From NCBI RefSeq assembly GCF_033153115.1, contig NW_026889758.1, positions 16,616,001-16,680,000 of the forward strand: 64,000 nt of DNA, in the 5' to 3' direction. The stretch's first letter is position 1; each line of letters opens with the position of its first letter. Under the pieces are notes generated by a model. It saw only the letters and a program-made list of their open reading frames with translations. It did no database searches and was not told where the DNA came from. Below, piece by piece: positions 219 to 61,258 of this stretch. This DNA comes from Saccostrea echinata (taxonomy: Eukaryota). Made by a program: the position numbers and the translations under genes.

Positions 219-19066
<18,848 letters not shown>

Positions 19067-43346: not shown

Positions 43347-46300
43347 TCAGGGTGCTGAAAAACAAAAAAAAAAAGAAAATGTAATAAAATTGCAATTTTA
43401 TAATTGAAAGAACAAATGCTTGAATATGATATTATTTTTATAATACTTAATGTACATAATTTTTCTTGCCACTATATATGTGTTTACTCATATTCTAACT
43501 TTCTTGAAAATTTTAGAAATTTTAAGAAACGGAAATTTCATTTAAAATCACTTGTATTGAGCTATGAAAATTATTAAATAAAACAAAAATAATTTTTTCA
43601 TTATGAATACCTTTGCATGTTTGATTTGGGATGAGGTTCCTGAGGTAATCTGTTGTACATCTCTGACACACGTCATCATGTATGGTGATGAAATTTCCGT
43701 CGTTTGTAACCTTTATGCATTCCTCCACCGTTTTACCACGTGACACAAGAGATCGTCTGCCTCTCGTAGCGAGTACTGCTTGTATTTGACCATCAGAAGT
43801 TGCCGTTTCTACCTTGTACTGACATTGTGCCAATATGTCAGATTCATATTCGCAGTCTCCGCTAAGTTGAATGGTTGATCCACAAGTGCTGTAAGTTATT
43901 TGTGTTCTGCATCTTTCACCTGATTAAAAAAATTTTTAAAAAATGAATTCTCACTTCAGAATAAATGCTTTTCTTGATCAAAACAGAACTTATTTCACTG
44001 CTCGTTCTGAAATGCTTCTCACCACCAAGAAGACATTTATGAATTTACAGTAACACTGATTGTGAACTTACGTAACTTATAAACTTAACTGAGGACGTAG
44101 GATAAAATCTAACTCAAACTCTAGATGGTTAGCTTGTAATAAAATCTAAACAGCACGAATTAAACTTGAGTTTTTTTTTTCAAGTAATAAAGTTAACACA
44201 TGAGAACTCACCAGGTGTACCAGTTGGGTCCTCTGAAATCAATGGGAAGTCTTCTATAGGTTCATCAGTTCCTACAGAAATATATATCACCCACTGTGTC
44301 ATTTGTAAACTATGAAGAGTAATTGATTTTCAAGCTGAGTGTTTGCTGTACTCACTTGTACATTCCTTCACACCGTCTCCATCAAAGCCGCGATTACATC
44401 TACATACAAAGTCACCCAGAACGTTTCTACACCGCGCATTCTTATGGCAGGTCATGTGACGAGTGGTCAGCGCCATCTTGTTGATGCCTCCACTTCTTAC
44501 ACACGTCTGGATGATTTCACAGTTTGTAAGAGGTCCATGGGAATTCAGCTACAAAGAAAGCTTAAAATGTAAACACGCTGTCAGAACTAAAAGAAAATAC
44601 AATTTCAATGACAAACAAGACCAAACTTAATTACGTGCATAACAACTAGCATCGTCTCAAGCCACGGTCCGGAGTCCGCGTATAGCTCTCTCTGAGAGGA
44701 TCGTACATTTTGACCTTGGTTTGCAACGATGAACAACTAGATTTTAAATTTTTTTTTAGTTTCATTGAAAAGTAATCTAAGCTTTTAATTTAAAAAAAAT
44801 TAAGCTAATATTTTGTGCCGATTGCTCGGCTTACATGATTCTTTTACTGGTGTAGCAATGCTGTATTACTGTTGCTGACACTTACAGGATAGTATTGATC
44901 ATTGAAAAAGCATCCACATTCGTCCTCTAGAACACACTTCTCTCCACTCAGAATGTATCCCTCTTTACACACACAACCTTCCTGTGGAACAAGATCACAT
45001 TTAGACTCCCCTTCAGGATCTGAACAGGTGCGTGGACATCCAACAATGGCTGGGTTGTATACAGCATTCTCAGAACATGCCAGAGCTGAAAACAATAGCA
45101 GGGTTATACACAGTACTCTAGGAGCAGGTCAGTGCTAAAAACAATAGCAGGATTATACACAGTATTCTCAGAGCAGGTCAGAGCTGAAAACAACAGCAGG
45201 GTTATACACAGTACTCTAGAAGCAGGTCAGCGCTGAAAACAGTCTTCTCCGAGGAGGTCAGAGCTGAAAACAAAAGCAGGTTTATACACAGCTCTCCTAG
45301 AGCAGGTCAGAGCTGAAATGATTTTTACAATGAAGCAAGCATTGCAGCGTTAATACTCTTCATTCCATGTAATCATGGTGATTGAACCGAAAAGTGAAAA
45401 AGAATATAGTATAAAGATCTTACGACAAAAGTCGGTCTTTCTCCACACTACTTTTCCAAATCCTTTGATAAGACACATTTCTGCGAGCGATTCTCCTGCC
45501 ATGCAGGCTGTCTTCATGGCAAAAGCAGGTTTGTCTTCATAAGAACAAACATCGTCCATACATGACTGGTACAGTTCCTTAGCCAAGTTCTCATCCGCTT
45601 TGATGCATCTTGCAAATGGTCCCGATTTATCCAACAAAACACCACAGAACTCATTTGATGCTGCTCGCTTGGACCAAAGAGATGAACACTTGAAATCAGA
45701 GTCAGTGGTGACACACCTAAAACATGCAATTGATTATTTTATTGTTTTTAATTTGTATTTTGTTTTTTTCTGTTTACTTAATGGTTTTAAAGTACTTTAA
45801 AGATACAGACTTAGAGCTTCATGCTTGTATCTGCTGTTTGTACAATTTAGCGTTTTACTTTTCTGCGGACTTTGCGACATCGTCGAACACTTGGTAACTT
45901 TCTCCAATTAGTGAGTACTTGTTGGGTCTCGTGGATACGTCATCACCAGTCTTTGTTCGCAGGTCATCCTTTTTGCCATTACAGTTGCCACAGATGCCTG
46001 TTACATGGTCGCTATATTGTTTTGGTATAGATAAAGAAACTGAATGTACGCCATCAAAACTAACGACAACTCCACACGTTGTGCTGACTGTGAGGAAACG
46101 TCCCTTCGTCGTCACTTTATAAAAACCGTTAAAGGATGTCCATGGTGCAAACATTTTTATACCATTAATCTGTTAACGAAATTAATGACTAATGAACAAC
46201 ATTCAAAATCCTACTTGTGAATAAAGTTATAATTCGTTTAAATTCTTATTCAAGTGTATCTTACTGTTAATTGGTTCTTCTGAAGCAAACGTATATTATA

Positions 46301-49300
46301 TCCGGGCACTTTAACATCAACTAGTCGTGTGAAGGACACCTTGGCATTCTGATGACGTCTTACATTTTTAACCTCTACGTTGAATGAGCACTTGTCCTTG
46401 GAATTGAATTTGGACAGAGTGTACTTACATTCACCCATGAAATGGATCATTTGTCCGTCAAAGGTCCGGTAGTGGGGATCGCCGGACGCCATGCAAGTGC
46501 AAGACTCTAAATAAGAAAATTCGTTTGATGATTTATGAATTCTCTCCCTCTCTCTATTCTTTTGATAGAAGTAACATGTAATATATTTTATTTACTAATA
46601 CATATATGTATTTTAATGCAGAATACAACAAGCTTCCGAGGGCTTAGGACGCACAATTACAATTCAAAGGTTTCAATCCTTTGCTACAACTTGATGTACA
46701 TTGGACGTCCTTTAAACTATAAATGAATTTACAAAATTGTTTTCTTTCAATGTTGCGCCTCCTCCCCTAAATTAAAAATTGAAGTACATGAGATGGTGTA
46801 GGGGTCTAAAAAGTCTTCTAGACGCCATTACTTTCAAATCTGATCCCCAAACATAAAATCATAGGTTTGCATCTAACAATTACAAGTCACAAAGTGAAAT
46901 TCTCTATATTTATGTGATAAATGTTGTTAATTGATTTCACCTTGACAAGAGGAGATTCCATCTCCAAATAATCCTCTGTTACACTGACATATTCCATTAT
47001 CACACCTGGCATTCTCGTGACAAAGGTGTTTTCCACCACACAGTTCTGTAAATTAAAGGAAAGAATGATTCGATATAATCAAGTAGCATATACCGTATGA
47101 TAAGCAAGCAGATAAATGAATTTAATTACGTGTTGGACCTACTTTTACACTCATTGACTCCATCTCCCATATAACCCTCCTTACAGACACATTGTCGAAC
47201 ACCGTCCTTCAGGCCACACAAACCATCAGAATGACAGCGCTCATTGGTACCAAGAACCTGCAAAACTGCCTCCCCATCCCTTCTGATGCACTTCTTTGTC
47301 GTAGTACAGTCATCTGATACAATGACGGCATTTAACTAAAATCAAATTTCCGTTTCTTAATGAATTCATCAGGACTGCCACAAATACATACGTTAGTATT
47401 CTGTATCAAACGTAGAACTTTATATAAAGAATAGGAAAAAAATCGTTAATTGGAAGCTTAAGATAATTTCTAAAACGAGGCAAGCTATTGACAAATATAA
47501 TAAATATAATCTCGTTTAATTTCGCAAATTCTATGGTCGATACAATGACCTTGTTAGCAAATACAATCAATCGTTAAAGTGAATGTTTATGGACGTTTTT
47601 CATACAAACTGTTAGGCCATTATTTTTCACACTGAATTGTCTACAGATTTTTCCGTTTTTATCATGAAAAGGAGCATGTGACCGGTCGACAGAGTACTCC
47701 TCCATGACACCTGATCCCACCTCTAATGTTTTAAAAGGTCCGTGTTTGCTCTGCTCAAAATTTCTATTTTTTCAATGGACTTTTGAACTTGATTACTGAT
47801 CGTTATCTTCATATTTCGCTACTGAGTAGACGGAACGTACTGGAATATAATCCCCGTTAGCAGTCTGACATCCACATTCATTCTCTCGAACACAGCTTGT
47901 TCCACTCAGGACAAACCCTGGAAGACACTCGCATCCCTCCGTGTTGGGAAGGGGACATTTATTAGGCGCATTTGGTGATGTACATGTGGCAGGGCAACCG
48001 CTGACAGAGGTACTGTATCGCTGATTACCTCCACATTTAATTGCTAATGCAAAATAAAAATACGGTAGATTTAACGTGTTTTAATGATAAAGATCATCAT
48101 AAAAGCAATTAAGGACATTTGGGTTTCATTTTATATAGGTGTCTTGAGACTGAATATATCAATTAGACACCCAATTCTTTTGCTCAATTTTTGAAAAAAA
48201 GAGGGTATGTGGAAACATCTTTTCTCCTATTGTGTTACATCAGATTTTATTTATCTTACGACAGAAAGCAGATGATCTCCACTGCACCATAAAACCACTA
48301 GTTTCACAAACGGCCTCCAGTCCTTCTGCTGCCCTACAAGAAGCCTCCTTTCTTTTGGTTACATCATCAAAGTAGGAGCAGACGTCGTAGATACAAGATT
48401 CATACATCTGTGAGGCCAAAGTGGGTTTGTAAGCCAAGCAAATATTAAACGGGGAGCTTCTCCTTGTCTTGGGATTCAGTATTCCGCAGTGACTTTTGTC
48501 TGTAGCTATTGCAAGCATTTCTTTTGAGCACTGCACATCATCTTCTAGAGTTTTACATCTATTAACAAAAACATCAATTTTTTACACAACAAAATAATGC
48601 AACACTAAAATTTCGTTAAGGATTTTTTGATCGTGGAGATGTTTGTTTACTTACACAGTGGATGGTTTTTCCGTGTTGTCGTACACTTCATAACTTTTAC
48701 CAATCAGAACGTATTTGTTGCTCTTCCAAGAAACATCTGCACCGTCTTGGGTGCGATAATCGTTCTTCTTACCATCACAATTTCCGCATATTCCTTCCAT
48801 CTTCTTGCTGTAGGACCTTGGTACACCAACTTGAACTACCGATTTTCCATCCCAATTTACCATGACGTTACATTTTGTGACCAGTTGGACAAATCTTCCA
48901 CTCATCATTATCTTCAAGTCCCCGTTGTTCTCTGAGACGGGGAGGAACTTCTTTTCTCCATTTATCTGAAATGACGCATAAGTATATTCGACAAAGTGAA
49001 ATCATTTTTTCACCGATTTATTATTAATGTTCCTCGTATTTACAAAAATGCAATGAATTATTAATAATGTTCAAATGTTAAAACAATCTTTATTTGTAAA
49101 TGCAGAGATTCATAAACGTACATAAACTTTATGATTTGGAGCTAATCGTACGACTTTGCCATATATTTTAACATAAACGCTTCTGGTATATGCTACACGT
49201 CTGTTTCGCCCTCTGTGTTCATTTTTAACCTCTACGCTGAACGCACACGGGTCATTTCTTTTCAGAGATCTGGTCATCGTATATTTACAGATGCCCATAA

Positions 49301-52300
49301 AGTGAATCATCTGACCGTCATATGTTCTGTAATGAGGGTCACCGCTTGCACTACAGGTACACATCTCTACAAATGAGAGACATCGAGGCAGTCAAACATA
49401 AAATGTTAAAAGTTTACAAGGATAAACGGTTACGGATTTGTATTTACAAAGTGTAAAATTGAAATGGTTCAATAATTCTTATGTAAAAATCAGTTTTTGA
49501 AACAATTGTTTCATTGGTTATAAGAGAGAAACAATAGAACTCTAAAAGAATTCATACTTTCACAGCTGTTCTCCCCATCACCAAATAATCCACGCCTACA
49601 CTGACACCTGCCCTTCTTACAAGTGGCTTTCTTGTGGCACCGATATTTACCACCACACAAAGCTGCAAGGTAGATCATATATATATGTACTACAGTATTT
49701 TTTTTAAATTAATAAATGATCAAGCAAATGTCAAGGGCGACATACTACTAAGCAATGAGCATCGATACAAACCTCAAGATTTTTTGGAAATATGACTTAC
49801 GCTGGCAGGTTTTGTATCCATCCCCGTAGTACCCTTTTTTACACTCGCAACTTCTTTCACCATTCTCATCCAGACGACATTGGCCTCTCCGGTGACATCT
49901 GACGCCCGAGGAAGTTTTCACTAACACAGCTTTGCCACGAACCTTCTTACATTCAAATACTTCTGCACAGTTGGTGGCACGAATTTTGCTTCCAATCTGA
50001 ATTAGAAAATAGAATGGCAAAATTGTTTCACCAGTTAATGCTGAAGCAGTTTCCAGCGTTTGTTAAGTATTTGTTGTTTATTACTTGTTGTGATGGCCCT
50101 AAACTCGTAAAAATTCAAATATTCACAAATTGTGTTTTGTTGAAAATCAAAAATATGTCAAGTTAAAAGTAGGTAAACTGGCTCCTTTGAGATTTTTTTT
50201 CTCTATCTTTATTACGAAGTATAACCGTTAGTTACCGGGAAGTAATCCCCTTTGTCATTTCTGCACCCACACTGCTCTTGTTTTACGCAAACTCCGTCAC
50301 TTAGCACAAATCCCTCCCGACAGAAACAGCCTTCTGTTGGTTCTATAGTGCACGAGTCCTCAGCCTTTGGGTCCAGACAGGTGGCTGGACAGCCTGGGCC
50401 ACTGCTTCTGTATTCCGCATTCTTGTCCTCACATTTAAAGGCTGCAAAATAGGGAGATTTATTTTTCCGATAATGGAATAAAAGATTAAATGCTATATAT
50501 GCATGTTATCCAAATTAATTGAAATAGCAGATTAAAGTACCCAGTCAAATTTAAAGGTGCTTAGACACAGATTTGAACTTAATATTTTCTCAAATTTTCT
50601 GTATAATATCACGACTTATATATTGCAATAGCATTTCACACGAAAATATAATTAAAAACTTAGTTTATCTGGAAATTATTGGAACTACGAATTCCGGGAC
50701 GCGTTTGATTAACACCTCTTTGCACTTACACAAATTTTAACTTTATCCTTAATATTTAAGAAAAGAAGCGATTTTGTTATGTATTAATGAAAAATATTAC
50801 ATCTGTAATCCAGAAAATTCAGAGTAGAAATGTTCAAAAGCAAAACCAAATCACCAGTATTGTCAGTCCGTGCTCTGTGATGTGTACAGAGTTTAACAAA
50901 TTGAACACACCCGTGAAACGTAAACTGTTTTTGTAAACAGGGCACGAGCTCTGTTATTGTTAATGTTTACGATTCACCGGGTGTGTTCAATTGTTAAACT
51001 CTGCACAAACCACTGAGCACGGACTTATAAAATACTGTGAGTGGGTTTTGCTTTCGAACATTTATACTATGAAATTTCTGGGTTATAGTTTTACTATTTT
51101 CATTAATACACAACAAAATTGCCACTTTTCTCAAGTACTAGTATTAAGAATAAAATTAAAATATGTCAAAGCGCAAGGATGTGTCAATCCAACGCGTCCA
51201 GAAATTCGAAGTTTTAATAACTTGGAGATGAAATAAGATTTTTATTATATTTTAGTATGAAGTGCTATAGCAACATATAAGTCATGAAATTATACAGAAA
51301 ATTTGAGAAAATATTAACTTCAAATCTGTGTCCAAGCACCTTTAAGGCAAATAACGTTTTGTGCATTTAATCACCAGGTTCCTATAATTCTTCTTCCTAT
51401 AAACTTTTAAAGAAGATATTTAGAAGAATTACATATGTTAACATTCATAATTTTCCTTGCCGAAATAAATCATGGCATGCAATATATGGAGTTAACGAAC
51501 AGTATTCAAGCTCAAAAGTCCATTAAACAATATAAATTTTGGAGCAGAGTAAACACGGACCTCTAAAACATCAGAGGTGGGATCAGGTGCCATGGAGGAG
51601 TGAACATCTAATCCCATCTCTGATGTTTTTAGAGGCCCGTGTTACTCTGCTCCCAATTTGTATTGTCCCAATGAACTTTTGACCTTAATTACTTTTCGTT
51701 ACTTCATATTATATCTTTCAAGTACGGTTGCTATGAAGTTGTTGATAAAAACATTGGGTATTTTATAACTTCAGTGTCCATATGTAACATTGATAACTTG
51801 ATAACTATTTGTGAGAATTCAAGAACCTTTGATAAGGTACCAATGGGAATTTCCGAAAATAGCTTAAACTCCCTCCCCCCGAAATTAATTACTTTTCTGC
51901 GAAAAAGCTATCAAAAGTAAATTTACGACAAAATGCTGTTGTCCTCCATTTGATCGTGATTCCGTTATCTGCGCAGTCCTCCGCAAACGCCTCCACTGCC
52001 TCACATTTGGCCACCTCTAGATTAGTTCCCTCCAATGAACACACATCAATCCGACACGATTCAAAGTACTCCTTTGCCATTTCTGGAAACTTGGCAATAC
52101 ATTCTGCGAATGGTCCCTTCTTGTTCTGGATCCAACCACAATATTTGTCAGTGGCCAACAGGTTACTCATTTTTGCATCGCACGTAAACGCATATGGTGT
52201 GTCCTGCTCAGTCTTACATCTAAACAAGTAATTATGAATTTAATGTTAATTTTACTGACATTTACAAATTTAAATAAGCCACTATTCATTTCGTGCACGA

Positions 52301-55300
52301 CATAAATATAGTTACAGATTTCAAAAGGAGTGCTATATGAAAATTTCTGAGCAATATTTAAAAGCTATTGTTCATTATAACGTTGCAAGAGGACTAAAAT
52401 ATTATGTGAAGTACTTCTCTTCTCCAATATTTGTGTCGTCATCCACCTCATAGCTGTTTCCGATGAGAGAGTACCTTAATTTCTCCCTTCTGACGTCACG
52501 TCCTGTACTGGTTCTCATGTCGTCACGTTTACCGTTACAATCACCACACAGACCAGTTAGCTTCCCCCGGTACTTACCGGGAACTGTTACCGACACAGCA
52601 TGTACACCGTCAAAGTTAACCTTTACTCCACACGAAGTCCAAATCTGGACAAAACGTCCACTTCTGAACACCTTCAGTCTTCCATCGAGTTCGCTTACTG
52701 GTAAAAACTTCTTTTCTCCGTCAATCTACAAAGATATTTAATGAATGGACCACGTGCAAATTAGTCATCAGAATCGTTGTAAGGATTTATTTGGTTCTAG
52801 GGTATGAATCCTGAATTTCAATCTCAATTTCTATAGTCTCAAAAGTGCTTTTATAAAATATTTTTATAAACAGTACGAATTAGACGTAGCTTTTGTTAAA
52901 CAAAAACTTATGTCTCCCTCTTTTGCGTTAAAGTCAAGAAACACATTCCAGTTGTTGATAAAGTGCATTACAATCAACTGATCAAGAGTAAAAACCCAGA
53001 CAAAATGACGTGATAGATAAACGGACAGAAAATTACAAAAAATACCCCCTTGTATGGGGAGGCAGCATTATAGATAACATACTGTAAACTGGACATATTA
53101 TCCATGCAAAAAAGTTACCACTGCTAAACCCTTTAGACGTAAACTGATTCTCTTTCCTAAGATGTCCACATCTACTCTCCGAGTGAAGGAAACTCGTGTA
53201 TTCTTGTTTCTGTGTTCATTTTTCACGGTGACCTGGAAGCCGCACGCATCATTTGGTGTCAGTGATTTCGTCAGAGTGTACTTGCATGTACCCATGAAGT
53301 GAATCATTTCACCGTCATACGTTTTATAGTGAGGGTCCCCGGACGCCATACAGAAACACGACTCTAACAATGTGAGAAGTATATGAATGATAATTATGGA
53401 TACTTTCAATTAGTTAAGTGTTATTGTAGCTTTTGATCACACTTAAATTACTTACTTGTACAAGTGTTGTAACCGTCACCATGAAAACCTCGATTGCACC
53501 TGCATTTTCCTTTACGGCATGATGCATTCCTGGAGCATTGCCTTCCTCCGCAACTTGAAATTCTCAATTTTGCTGCAAAGAATGGAATAAAGAATTCACC
53601 CCTTTTACTCTCAGAAAAAATCACTTTAAAGTTTTATGTCCACAATTATACCGCAAACGTACGTCTGCAGGACCGGAATCCATCCCCGGTAAATCCTTTG
53701 TTACAAACACACGTTCTCTCGCCTTCTTTGTTCAGACCACATTTGGCGTTTTTATGACACCTCAGTCTTCTGGATACTCTAGTAAAAGATGACACTCCTC
53801 GAGAATTTCTACATACATAGGTGGATCCACAGTTAGAGCTCTGCAACTTGGTTCCAACCTGAAAAAATATAATTAGTTCATTGATTGTTTTTGCTTTACG
53901 TCCCTTGAAAGATTATTTCAGACATGTGAGACGTCATTGAATGTCAGTTAAGGGCTCCAAATTTAAACCCCAGTCACATTTCAAAAAACGACCATCGGCC
54001 GACGGTTTTTGAGGCAAAAAATGGGATTCCTCGGGTGACAGTCGGCACTTCATCGGCCGTTGTCTTGCCCGATTTTGACCTATTTTTTCGTTAGACGACC
54101 AATTTTGTGTCTGTCGGTCCCACTTATAATAATTTTTTCTGCGTCTGTGGCCGATTTTTTTTAATTGAAGTAGTCATTGAATAGTTCGTCGACTAACCCT
54201 CGATCATCAGCCAACCATCGGCAGGCAGTTTGTTTAGTCGGTCGGTCGATATTTAGGTATTGGGTTTTCGTAAATGTCGACCAGCGGCGAAAATCAAACT
54301 GCGTTTTCAGCGCTTGCTGATAGGGCGACGGTTGGTCGACATATGAATATTTAAACTTTTAAAATCATCGGTGTTCCTAGGAATTAATGTGACTGTTCCA
54401 CAATGCCCGATATTAGTGTCGGCCGATCATGTTTTTTTCAGCTAAACATAGAGAAAAATTTGATCGCCCGACCATCGGCTTAAATGTGACCCAGGTATTA
54501 GACCTTAACTCGGAACTTAAAGTCATTGAGCAGCGAGGGATCTTTATCGTTTCAACGCATGTAGTGATACTGTGGAATCATTATATTTCATGGTGGCTCA
54601 ATTTTCGTGGAATTCGTGCGTATCTCTCATCCACGAATTAACATCCTCCACGAATTAATAAATTAGGATTATAAAATCATATTTCCTTTTGTAGGTATAA
54701 TGGAAAACACGAAATTACATCCCCATTAACCTGTAAGATATAAGCAATCCACGAAAATTGGCCCCCACGAATTTTAATGATTCTACAGTATGGGGCCTCA
54801 ATATTTGATGTCTCATCCAAAAAGAACCGCAACTCTCACGTCGAAGTGCCGAAAGCTTAGCAAAGGAACTATTTTTTTTTTACTGAAGTTTATTCGACTT
54901 TGGTCTGTTGCCGCCAGACCTTGAACCTTTCACCTTTCGATCACTGAGCGAGCGCTCTAATGACTGTGCTACTGTGACGGTTGAAAAAGATATAATGTCA
55001 TTCATGAAGTATATACAATGTAAAATATCTCTTGTCTCTTTTATAATTAAAGCATAAATGGCCATCTTGAAGAAGCACTGCAAATTTGATGTTTAATGAT
55101 GATCGTTGCTACACGTAAAATTGAGGAAACGATCATTTATAGTATGTTCTACATTTTTCAATATTTGAAAGTGAGGCAAGTTTATGAAAATGATCAGTTA
55201 CCGGGTAATAGTCGCCAGCTTTTGTTTTACATCCACACAGCTTCTGCGGAACGCAAGCTCCATCACTCATCAGATACCCGGCTTTGCAGAAGCATCCTTC

Positions 55301-61258: not shown

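Follow-up and report, generated by a model that had tools for sequence, protein, structure and literature searches.

We investigated a 64,000-nucleotide (nt) stretch of the genome of the oyster Saccostrea echinata (RefSeq assembly GCF_033153115.1, contig NW_026889758.1, positions 16,616,001 to 16,680,000; hereafter the window, in whose numbering all positions are given), which contains no runs of N. We found that its minus strand carries, from a start codon at 61258 to a stop codon at 43349-43347, a gene of 35 exons in which every intron is bounded by GT-AG, and whose open coding sequence of 7941 nt encodes a protein of 2646 amino acids (aa; isoelectric point (pI) of the whole protein, 9.3). 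The product (about 290 kDa) is rather likely to be secreted and to act as a glycan-binding cross-linker with several subunits, of the FCGBP/Sfp1 type, in a mucus or adhesive that the animal releases to the outside. By analogy with the precedents discussed below, it may plausibly serve in adhesion or as a cement. The gene is already present in RefSeq under a similarity name, and the protein design is of a known kind; the new points are modest and consist of a C-terminal domain assigned to no family, a cationic head that is family-wide, and a corrected N-terminus.

Domain architecture

The encoded domains follow one another in the order signal peptide, lysine/arginine/glycine/serine-rich (K/R/G/S) head, SUEL lectin, FAMeT-like domain, WSC, EGF, four VWD-C8-TIL-EGF modules and the C-terminal domain. 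A single chain therefore unites two kinds of carbohydrate-binding domain (SUEL and WSC) with a FAMeT-like beta domain and a disordered head. The first-pass annotation of this DNA had proposed a single open 35-exon frame with a signal peptide, a K/R/G/S repeat and these SUEL-to-VWD domains; upon rebuilding, the frame was recovered with the same ends, and each element was found at its proposed place on the minus strand. Had the N-terminal exons and the VWD modules belonged to separate genes, the proposal would have failed; they are joined in single proteins in the orthologue models.

Pfam scans were run exon by exon on the stop-free open segments from 61258 to 43500. VWD (two exons apiece), C8 and TIL were each found in four sets, all above the Pfam cut-offs, and the modules additionally carry one or two EGF domains, with EGF_CA below its cut-off. 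The SUEL exon bears the YGR, DPC and KYL motifs of the rhamnose/galactose-binding lectin type. The WSC domain is split by a 95-nt intron, with profile positions 1-45 (E = 1e-07) and 39-82 (E = 2.6e-07) lying on two exons. Across all exons, there was no match to IgGFc_binding (PF17517), MAM, F5_F8_type_C (FA58C) or Lectin_C, and neither the purine-rich long segment nor the last 133-aa open segment matched any Pfam family. Likewise, the 2646-aa protein contains no proline/threonine/serine-rich (PTS) mucin region, no cystine knot and no transmembrane segment or membrane anchor. Modules 1 and 2 share 72% aa identity and 78% DNA identity across their shared intron, which points to a fairly recent tandem duplication. 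Most domain exons are of phase 1-1, as expected for shuffled extracellular modules.

Polycationic head and N-terminus

The repeat exon (exon 2, 60683-59673) is coding in the K/R/G/S frame. This frame contains no stop codon, versus 13 and 34 in the other two, and composition-matched shuffles of the exon contained 15.3 stops on average, with 0 of 5000 remaining open. Its tandem-repeat periods (33, 66, 111 and 309 nt) are all divisible by 3, and the 309-nt unit occurs twice in copies that are 97% identical. The length of 345 aa first given for the repeat needed a small adjustment, to 338 aa by exon, or 344 aa if the stretch between the signal peptide and the first cysteine is counted. The head consists mainly of K (25%), G (19.5%), S (16%), R (11.5%) and E (10%) and is devoid of cysteine; with 37% K+R and 14% acidic residues, it has a net charge of +78 and a pI of 10.8, and it includes two RRKR sites.

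A cysteine-free head of this kind occurs in oysters, scallops and Mytilus (net charge +44 to +130; pI 9.9 to 11.8). Its charge and composition are kept across these groups; the repeat sequence itself turns over. In addition, VWD modules are preceded by cationic heads of other sequence types in abalone, sea slug and nemertean. Mollusc VWD proteins that carry no label beyond 'zonadhesin-like' thus have a cationic head as a recurrent feature, conserved in composition.

The RefSeq protein XP_061173301.1 ('zonadhesin-like', S. echinata) is 100% identical to our model over the last 2287 of 2646 aa, and hence represents the same gene. It starts at an internal ATG (60062) and reads the repeat exon in a frame other than ours for its first 130 aa, so that its N-terminus (59539-60062) is rich in E, K, A and G and has no signal peptide; its acceptor to SUEL lies 4 nt upstream of the junction in RNA contigs. 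The orthologue XP_062587284.1 ('zonadhesin-like', Saccostrea cucullata; 85.7% identity over 2646 aa) is collinear with all 35 exons from the signal peptide through …NQTCKAP, including the micro-exon and the linker. Furthermore, the start MRLY…AEVEGKK is common to the orthologues of S. cucullata, Ostrea edulis, Crassostrea gigas and C. virginica, and is followed in the last three by GGKSKE-type repeats. Exon 1 and the K/R/G/S frame find support both in the S. cucullata model and in the starts of the Ostrea and Crassostrea proteins, indicating that the N-terminus of the S. echinata RefSeq model, which is corrected here, is probably wrong. Neither of the two Saccostrea records has functional annotation, and database records of this kind are named 'zonadhesin-like' or 'IgGFc-binding protein-like', just as the first-pass annotation had expected of automated labels.

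A phmmer search with the FAMeT exon returned 2351 relatives and led to a scallop protein whose head is rich in K, S, E and H and which carries SUEL twice, FAMeT, EGF, VWD-C8-TIL in three modules and the C-terminal domain of the oyster protein; a search from this protein led back to the oyster orthologues. The domain set varies among bivalves: the Saccostrea and scallop proteins contain FAMeT, but the Crassostrea and Ostrea models do not; oysters and Mytilus have WSC, which scallops lack; and the number of modules is three in scallops, four in S. echinata and five in O. edulis.

RNA evidence for the gene came from assembled contigs of four small public runs (five were found), which were compared with 55350-61300 (5951 bases). 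Seven predicted junctions in this region were present in spliced contigs, and the joints have CT..AC ends, that is, GT..AG on the minus strand, which indicates that the runs contain spliced RNA of the gene. None of the contigs across this region spanned junctions 1-2, 7-8, 8-9 or 9-10 (numbered by exon). RNA coverage stops at TIL1, and junctions beyond TIL1 fall outside the compared region.

Proposed mode of action and alternative readings

All four VWD domains carry GDPH at their start (aa 757, 1213, 1665 and 2117), and the deposited chains of mouse FCGBP begin exactly at the proline aligned to this motif; it is thus fair to predict that the four sites are cut, leaving five pieces held together by disulfides. 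As a cross-linker, the protein may work as follows. In the secretory pathway, the VWD modules would cut themselves between GD and PH, and the five pieces would remain disulfide-bonded. The VWD-C8-TIL units would then build an intermolecular network through both disulfide and non-covalent contacts, with the SUEL and WSC lectin domains gripping glycans of partner glycoproteins or of a substrate film. The cationic head would bind polyanions (sulfated or carboxylated polysaccharides) and negative surfaces through charge, which could condense the secretion to a cohesive gel. The likeliest site would be the crawling mucus or cement of the larval foot, or pallial mucus.

Previous reports provide a setting for such a role. 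Acidic polysaccharide abounds in the foot glands of oyster larvae, and a band in the footprint is possibly sulfated polysaccharide (PMC6193008). The footprint of the quagga mussel is enriched in zonadhesin/FCGBP-like proteins (PMC12993968), and in C. gigas five neighbouring models named 'IgGFc-binding (zonadhesin-like)' are specific to the pediveliger stage (PMC6337334). These five (EKC18864-68; CGI_10010553-57) were not among the matches of our search with a 971-aa C. gigas fragment. The oyster larval adhesive has been resistant to proteomics, and its protein backbone is unknown (PMC6337334, PMC6193008); a K/R-rich head would account for poor tryptic coverage.

The closest solved chain is mouse FCGBP (8RDE; E = 3.8e-68 with module 1 as query). 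FCGBP (8RDE/8R0T) has tandem VWD-C8-TIL units with the C-x-ASGDPHY-x-TFDG…FMGTC motif, as in the oyster protein, and likewise lacks a PTS mucin region and a cystine-knot end. However, it comprises 12-13 modules, whereas the oyster protein has four, with EGF pairs between them; the N-terminal PF17517 domain seen in vertebrate FCGBPs and in P0111 is not in the oyster protein, which has in turn the polycationic head, SUEL, FAMeT, WSC and a distinct C-terminal domain as extras.

This relationship lends some weight to a different role, in mucosal immunity: the protein could be an FCGBP-like agglutinin in the mucus of gill or mantle that traps microbes instead of attaching the animal, with SUEL and WSC binding microbial glycans and the cationic head binding or damaging bacterial surfaces. 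A passage of PMC6337334 cites IgGFc-binding proteins from C. virginica mucus, and in metamorphosing C. angulata such proteins increase together with immune proteins (PMC7525975). Three runs, belonging to two studies, also yielded spliced contigs of the gene, and public RNA runs of oysters are presumably for the most part of adult tissue. Microbial binding is putative, however, and these features would suit a structural part in mucus or an adhesive equally well; an immune role would be compatible with either. We regard the agglutinin role as possible, though unlikely to be the main one.

Returning to the cross-linker of an external secretion, the first-pass annotation had based its proposal on two adhesive proteins, and the domain lists that it gave for them match the literature. 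The first is Sfp1 of the sea star Asterias rubens, which contains D-Gal lectin, FAMeT, VWD, C8, TIL and EGF domains and which, together with Sfp2, is cohesive in sea star footprints (PMC9382459). Sfp1 shares SUEL/D-Gal lectin, FAMeT, VWD, C8, TIL and EGF in one chain with the oyster protein and is similarly cysteine-rich with autocatalytic cleavage sites (PMC9382459, PMC6410801). By comparison of domain lists, the oyster protein differs in missing discoidin (FA58C), in its extra WSC and polycationic head, and in the order and number of domains. Among the best 150 of the 2351 FAMeT relatives, VWD occurred only in the scallop orthologue and one FCGBP-like protein, and a search with the SUEL-FAMeT region returned only the gene's own cluster, with no Sfp1.

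FAMeT also bears on whether the mantle edge secretes the protein into the periostracum or the organic matrix of the shell, as a passage of PMC9382459 cites FAMeT-domain proteins in mollusc biomineralisation gene sets, and the protein is of the cysteine-rich secreted matrix type. Nevertheless, the models of Crassostrea and Ostrea have lost FAMeT, no shell-proteome evidence was found, and a basic pI without acidic or Asp-rich regions is atypical for mineral-binding matrix proteins, making a shell matrix role quite improbable. A role in gamete recognition or the egg coat is more improbable still: it is suggested by names alone ('zonadhesin' and 'sea urchin egg lectin' in automated annotation), the former of which reflects VWD-module similarity only, and the protein has neither zonadhesin's MAM domains nor its mucin-like region nor its transmembrane anchor at the C-terminus, ending in …NQTCKAP with no hydrophobic segment. 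Mucin, true FCGBP orthologue and zonadhesin orthologue were each rejected as identities on domain content, given the lack of PTS, cystine knot, IgGFc_binding, MAM and membrane anchor.

The second adhesive protein that resembles our candidate cross-linker is Mlig-ap1 of the flatworm Macrostomum lignano, which contains lectin, VWD/C8/TIL, EGF and K/R-rich regions; these K/R regions bind polyanions, and attachment is blocked by heparin (PMC6410801). The combination of a K/R-rich disordered region with lectin, VWD/C8/TIL and EGF is found in the oyster protein as well. However, the K/R regions of Mlig-ap1 occupy both ends, exceed 3600 aa and are reported to have a pI above 14, whereas that of the oyster protein is a single N-terminal one, milder and roughly 10-fold shorter. 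In addition, Mlig-ap1 has a C-type lectin, one VWD unit and a long calcium-binding EGF array, in contrast to SUEL and WSC, four VWD units and EGFs that are single or paired between modules in the oyster protein. No homology was detectable between the repeats of the two proteins. Among molluscs, P-vulgata_4 of Patella vulgata is likewise a VWD protein with positively charged repeats, which glands of the pedal sole express and which occurs in the adhesive mucus of the foot; it is 830 aa long with one VWD and short C-terminal cationic repeats, and no lectin or FAMeT is reported (PMC7333891). The idea of a secreted cohesive protein of the FCGBP/Sfp1 type with a polycationic head is well founded, but the resemblance to Sfp1 and Mlig-ap1 that had been put forward is, as judged from domain lists, one of composition only.

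Several points weigh against the favoured reading. FAMeT, the element that most recalls Sfp1, is missing in the models of Crassostrea and Ostrea, which places this domain outside the conserved core, as far as gene models can tell. Both the cutting at GDPH and the binding through charge are deduced from motifs only. For the exon 1-2 and WSC-EGF-VWD1 junctions, support comes from orthologue models and not from reads, and the adhesive precedents cited above concern neither this gene nor a proven orthologue.

A wider and much more tentative proposal is that bivalves and other molluscs, possibly lophotrochozoans, share this cross-linker family as the cohesive backbone of larval and pedal adhesive secretions, condensed by charge with acidic polysaccharides in the way that has been proposed for flatworm ap1. 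Its members may combine a cationic disordered head, lectins, GDPH-cleaving VWD-C8-TIL modules and a new 8-cysteine C-terminal domain. If this doubtful proposal were true, the adhesive systems of sea stars, flatworms and molluscs would be variants of one old design, and FAMeT in adhesives would not be limited to sea stars. At present, what is available is a well-defined gene, single-copy as judged by its C-terminal domain, with the ingredients of the cohesive proteins of the two best-studied temporary-adhesion systems. This makes it a concrete target for work on oyster adhesives; should it prove to be a component of ordinary pallial mucus, its value would be one of annotation only.

C-terminal domain

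Across 10 bivalve sequences, 8 cysteines of the C-terminal domain are invariant, and the domain also has an RGRR site that is conserved. An AlphaFold2 model (predicted local distance difference test score, 81) is all-beta with a final helix. Foldseek against the PDB gave nothing under E = 0.03. In the VIA wide search, the best matches (Z = 6.4) were class II fusion proteins of viruses and gametes, and VWD domains scored Z = 4.5-4.8 against the C-terminal domain. All of these matches lie in the chance range, and we therefore claim no fold. In the 923-Mb genome, the domain occurs in one strong copy and one distant paralogue. The paralogue, on another contig (C2, about 8705000-8725000), has several VWD-C8-TIL-EGF exon sets (25-49% identity) followed by the related C-terminal domain (27-32% identity).

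Gene model and other features

A first chain of 31-32 exons was obtained by splice-site scoring and by comparing the four modules with each other; the 30-nt micro-exon was added from an RNA contig, and two further small exons and the last splice from orthologue alignment (Table 1). Exon 8 has a donor (GTATGT), and exon 9 an acceptor, of weak consensus, yet both sites are collinear with XP_061173301.1 and XP_062587284.1. The TATA-like box had been read as fitting strong gland-specific expression, on which such a box is uninformative.

Table 1. Features and RNA-contig joints of the S. echinata gene (window positions).
Feature	Position	Strand	Evidence or remark
TATA-like box TATATAAG	61305..61312	minus	54 nt 5' of ATG; predicted from sequence alone
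Exon 1, signal peptide MRLYIILLLLTVLIIVAEVE/G, phase-1 donor	61198..61258	minus	Start kept in orthologues
Exon 2, K/R/G/S polycationic repeat, 1011 nt	59673..60683	minus	Sole open frame; RNA contigs
Exon 3, SUEL lectin	59257..59535	minus	Pfam PF02140, E 6.5e-24, whole profile
Exon 4, 30-nt micro-exon (ATPSKPLRTS)	59114..59143	minus	Contig of run X1; also in XP_061173301.1 and XP_062587284.1
Exon 5, FAMeT-like (Methyltransf_FA)	58552..58992	minus	Pfam PF12248, E 1.2e-34
Exon 6, 51-nt linker GKPPVLQEEPQIQRPSK	58352..58402	minus	Placed by identity to XP_061173301.1
Exons 7 and 8, WSC	58225-58092, 57996-57864	minus	Pfam PF01822
Exon 9, EGF-like	57549..57653	minus	Weak Pfam EGF matches, cysteine pattern, orthologue collinearity
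Module 1 (VWD-C8-TIL-EGF-EGF)	57444-57200, 56426-56116, 55978-55686, 55407-55202, 53858-53663, 53572-53456	minus	Pfam VWD, C8, TIL, EGF_3; RNA joints
Module 2	53363-53119, 52725-52415, 52219-51927, 50441-50236, 49996-49801, 49662-49558	minus	Pfam
Module 3	49366-49122, 48965-48655, 48558-48260, 48043-47841, 47335-47143, 47045-46941	minus	Pfam; gene model
Module 4, one EGF only	46506-46265, 46169-45859, 45716-45424, 45085-44886, 44548-44356	minus	Pfam; gene model
Exon 33, 60-nt acidic linker RTDEPIEDFPLISEDPTGTP	44212..44271	minus	Identity to XP_061173301.1; conserved in four oysters
Exon 34, C-terminal domain, 102 aa	43611..43919	minus	Orthologue conservation; no Pfam family
Exon 35, final 8 coding bases (…K-A-P-stop)	43347..43354	minus	…NQTCKAP end common to all oyster orthologues
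Predicted polyadenylation signal AATAAA	43324..43329	minus	18 nt past stop; from sequence alone
RNA joint, repeat exon to SUEL	59673/59535	minus	Runs X2, X3
RNA joints, SUEL to micro-exon to FAMeT	59257/59143 and 59114/58992	minus	One contig, run X1
RNA joint, FAMeT to WSC, 51-nt exon skipped	about 58552/58227	minus	Run X5, related species
RNA joint, VWD1a to VWD1b	57200/56426	minus	Run X1
RNA joint, VWD1b to C8	56116/55978	minus	Run X2
RNA joint, C8 to TIL	55686/55407	minus	Runs X2, X5

The 51-nt linker exon (58352-58402) was left out in the contig of run X5. The FAMeT exon, which is of phase 1-1, is not in the Crassostrea and Ostrea models. From this skip and this gap, both exons may be alternatively used or lineage-specific.

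Intron 1 contains a dispersed repeat of about 400 bp (60725-61125), for which a first look at the genome gave 922 candidates; 40 scored copies, on many contigs, were 80-89% identical over the full length. The repeat includes a 14-nt near-perfect palindrome (61042-61070), is abundant in the RNA contigs of all four runs (depth up to 270), and looks like an element of the short interspersed nuclear element (SINE) or miniature inverted-repeat transposable element (MITE) type. Elsewhere in the window, a long open exon on the plus strand (7470-8147) resembles what we take to be the conserved N-terminal region of protein phosphatase 4 regulatory subunit 3 (SMEK), and presumably belongs to an unrelated neighbour gene.

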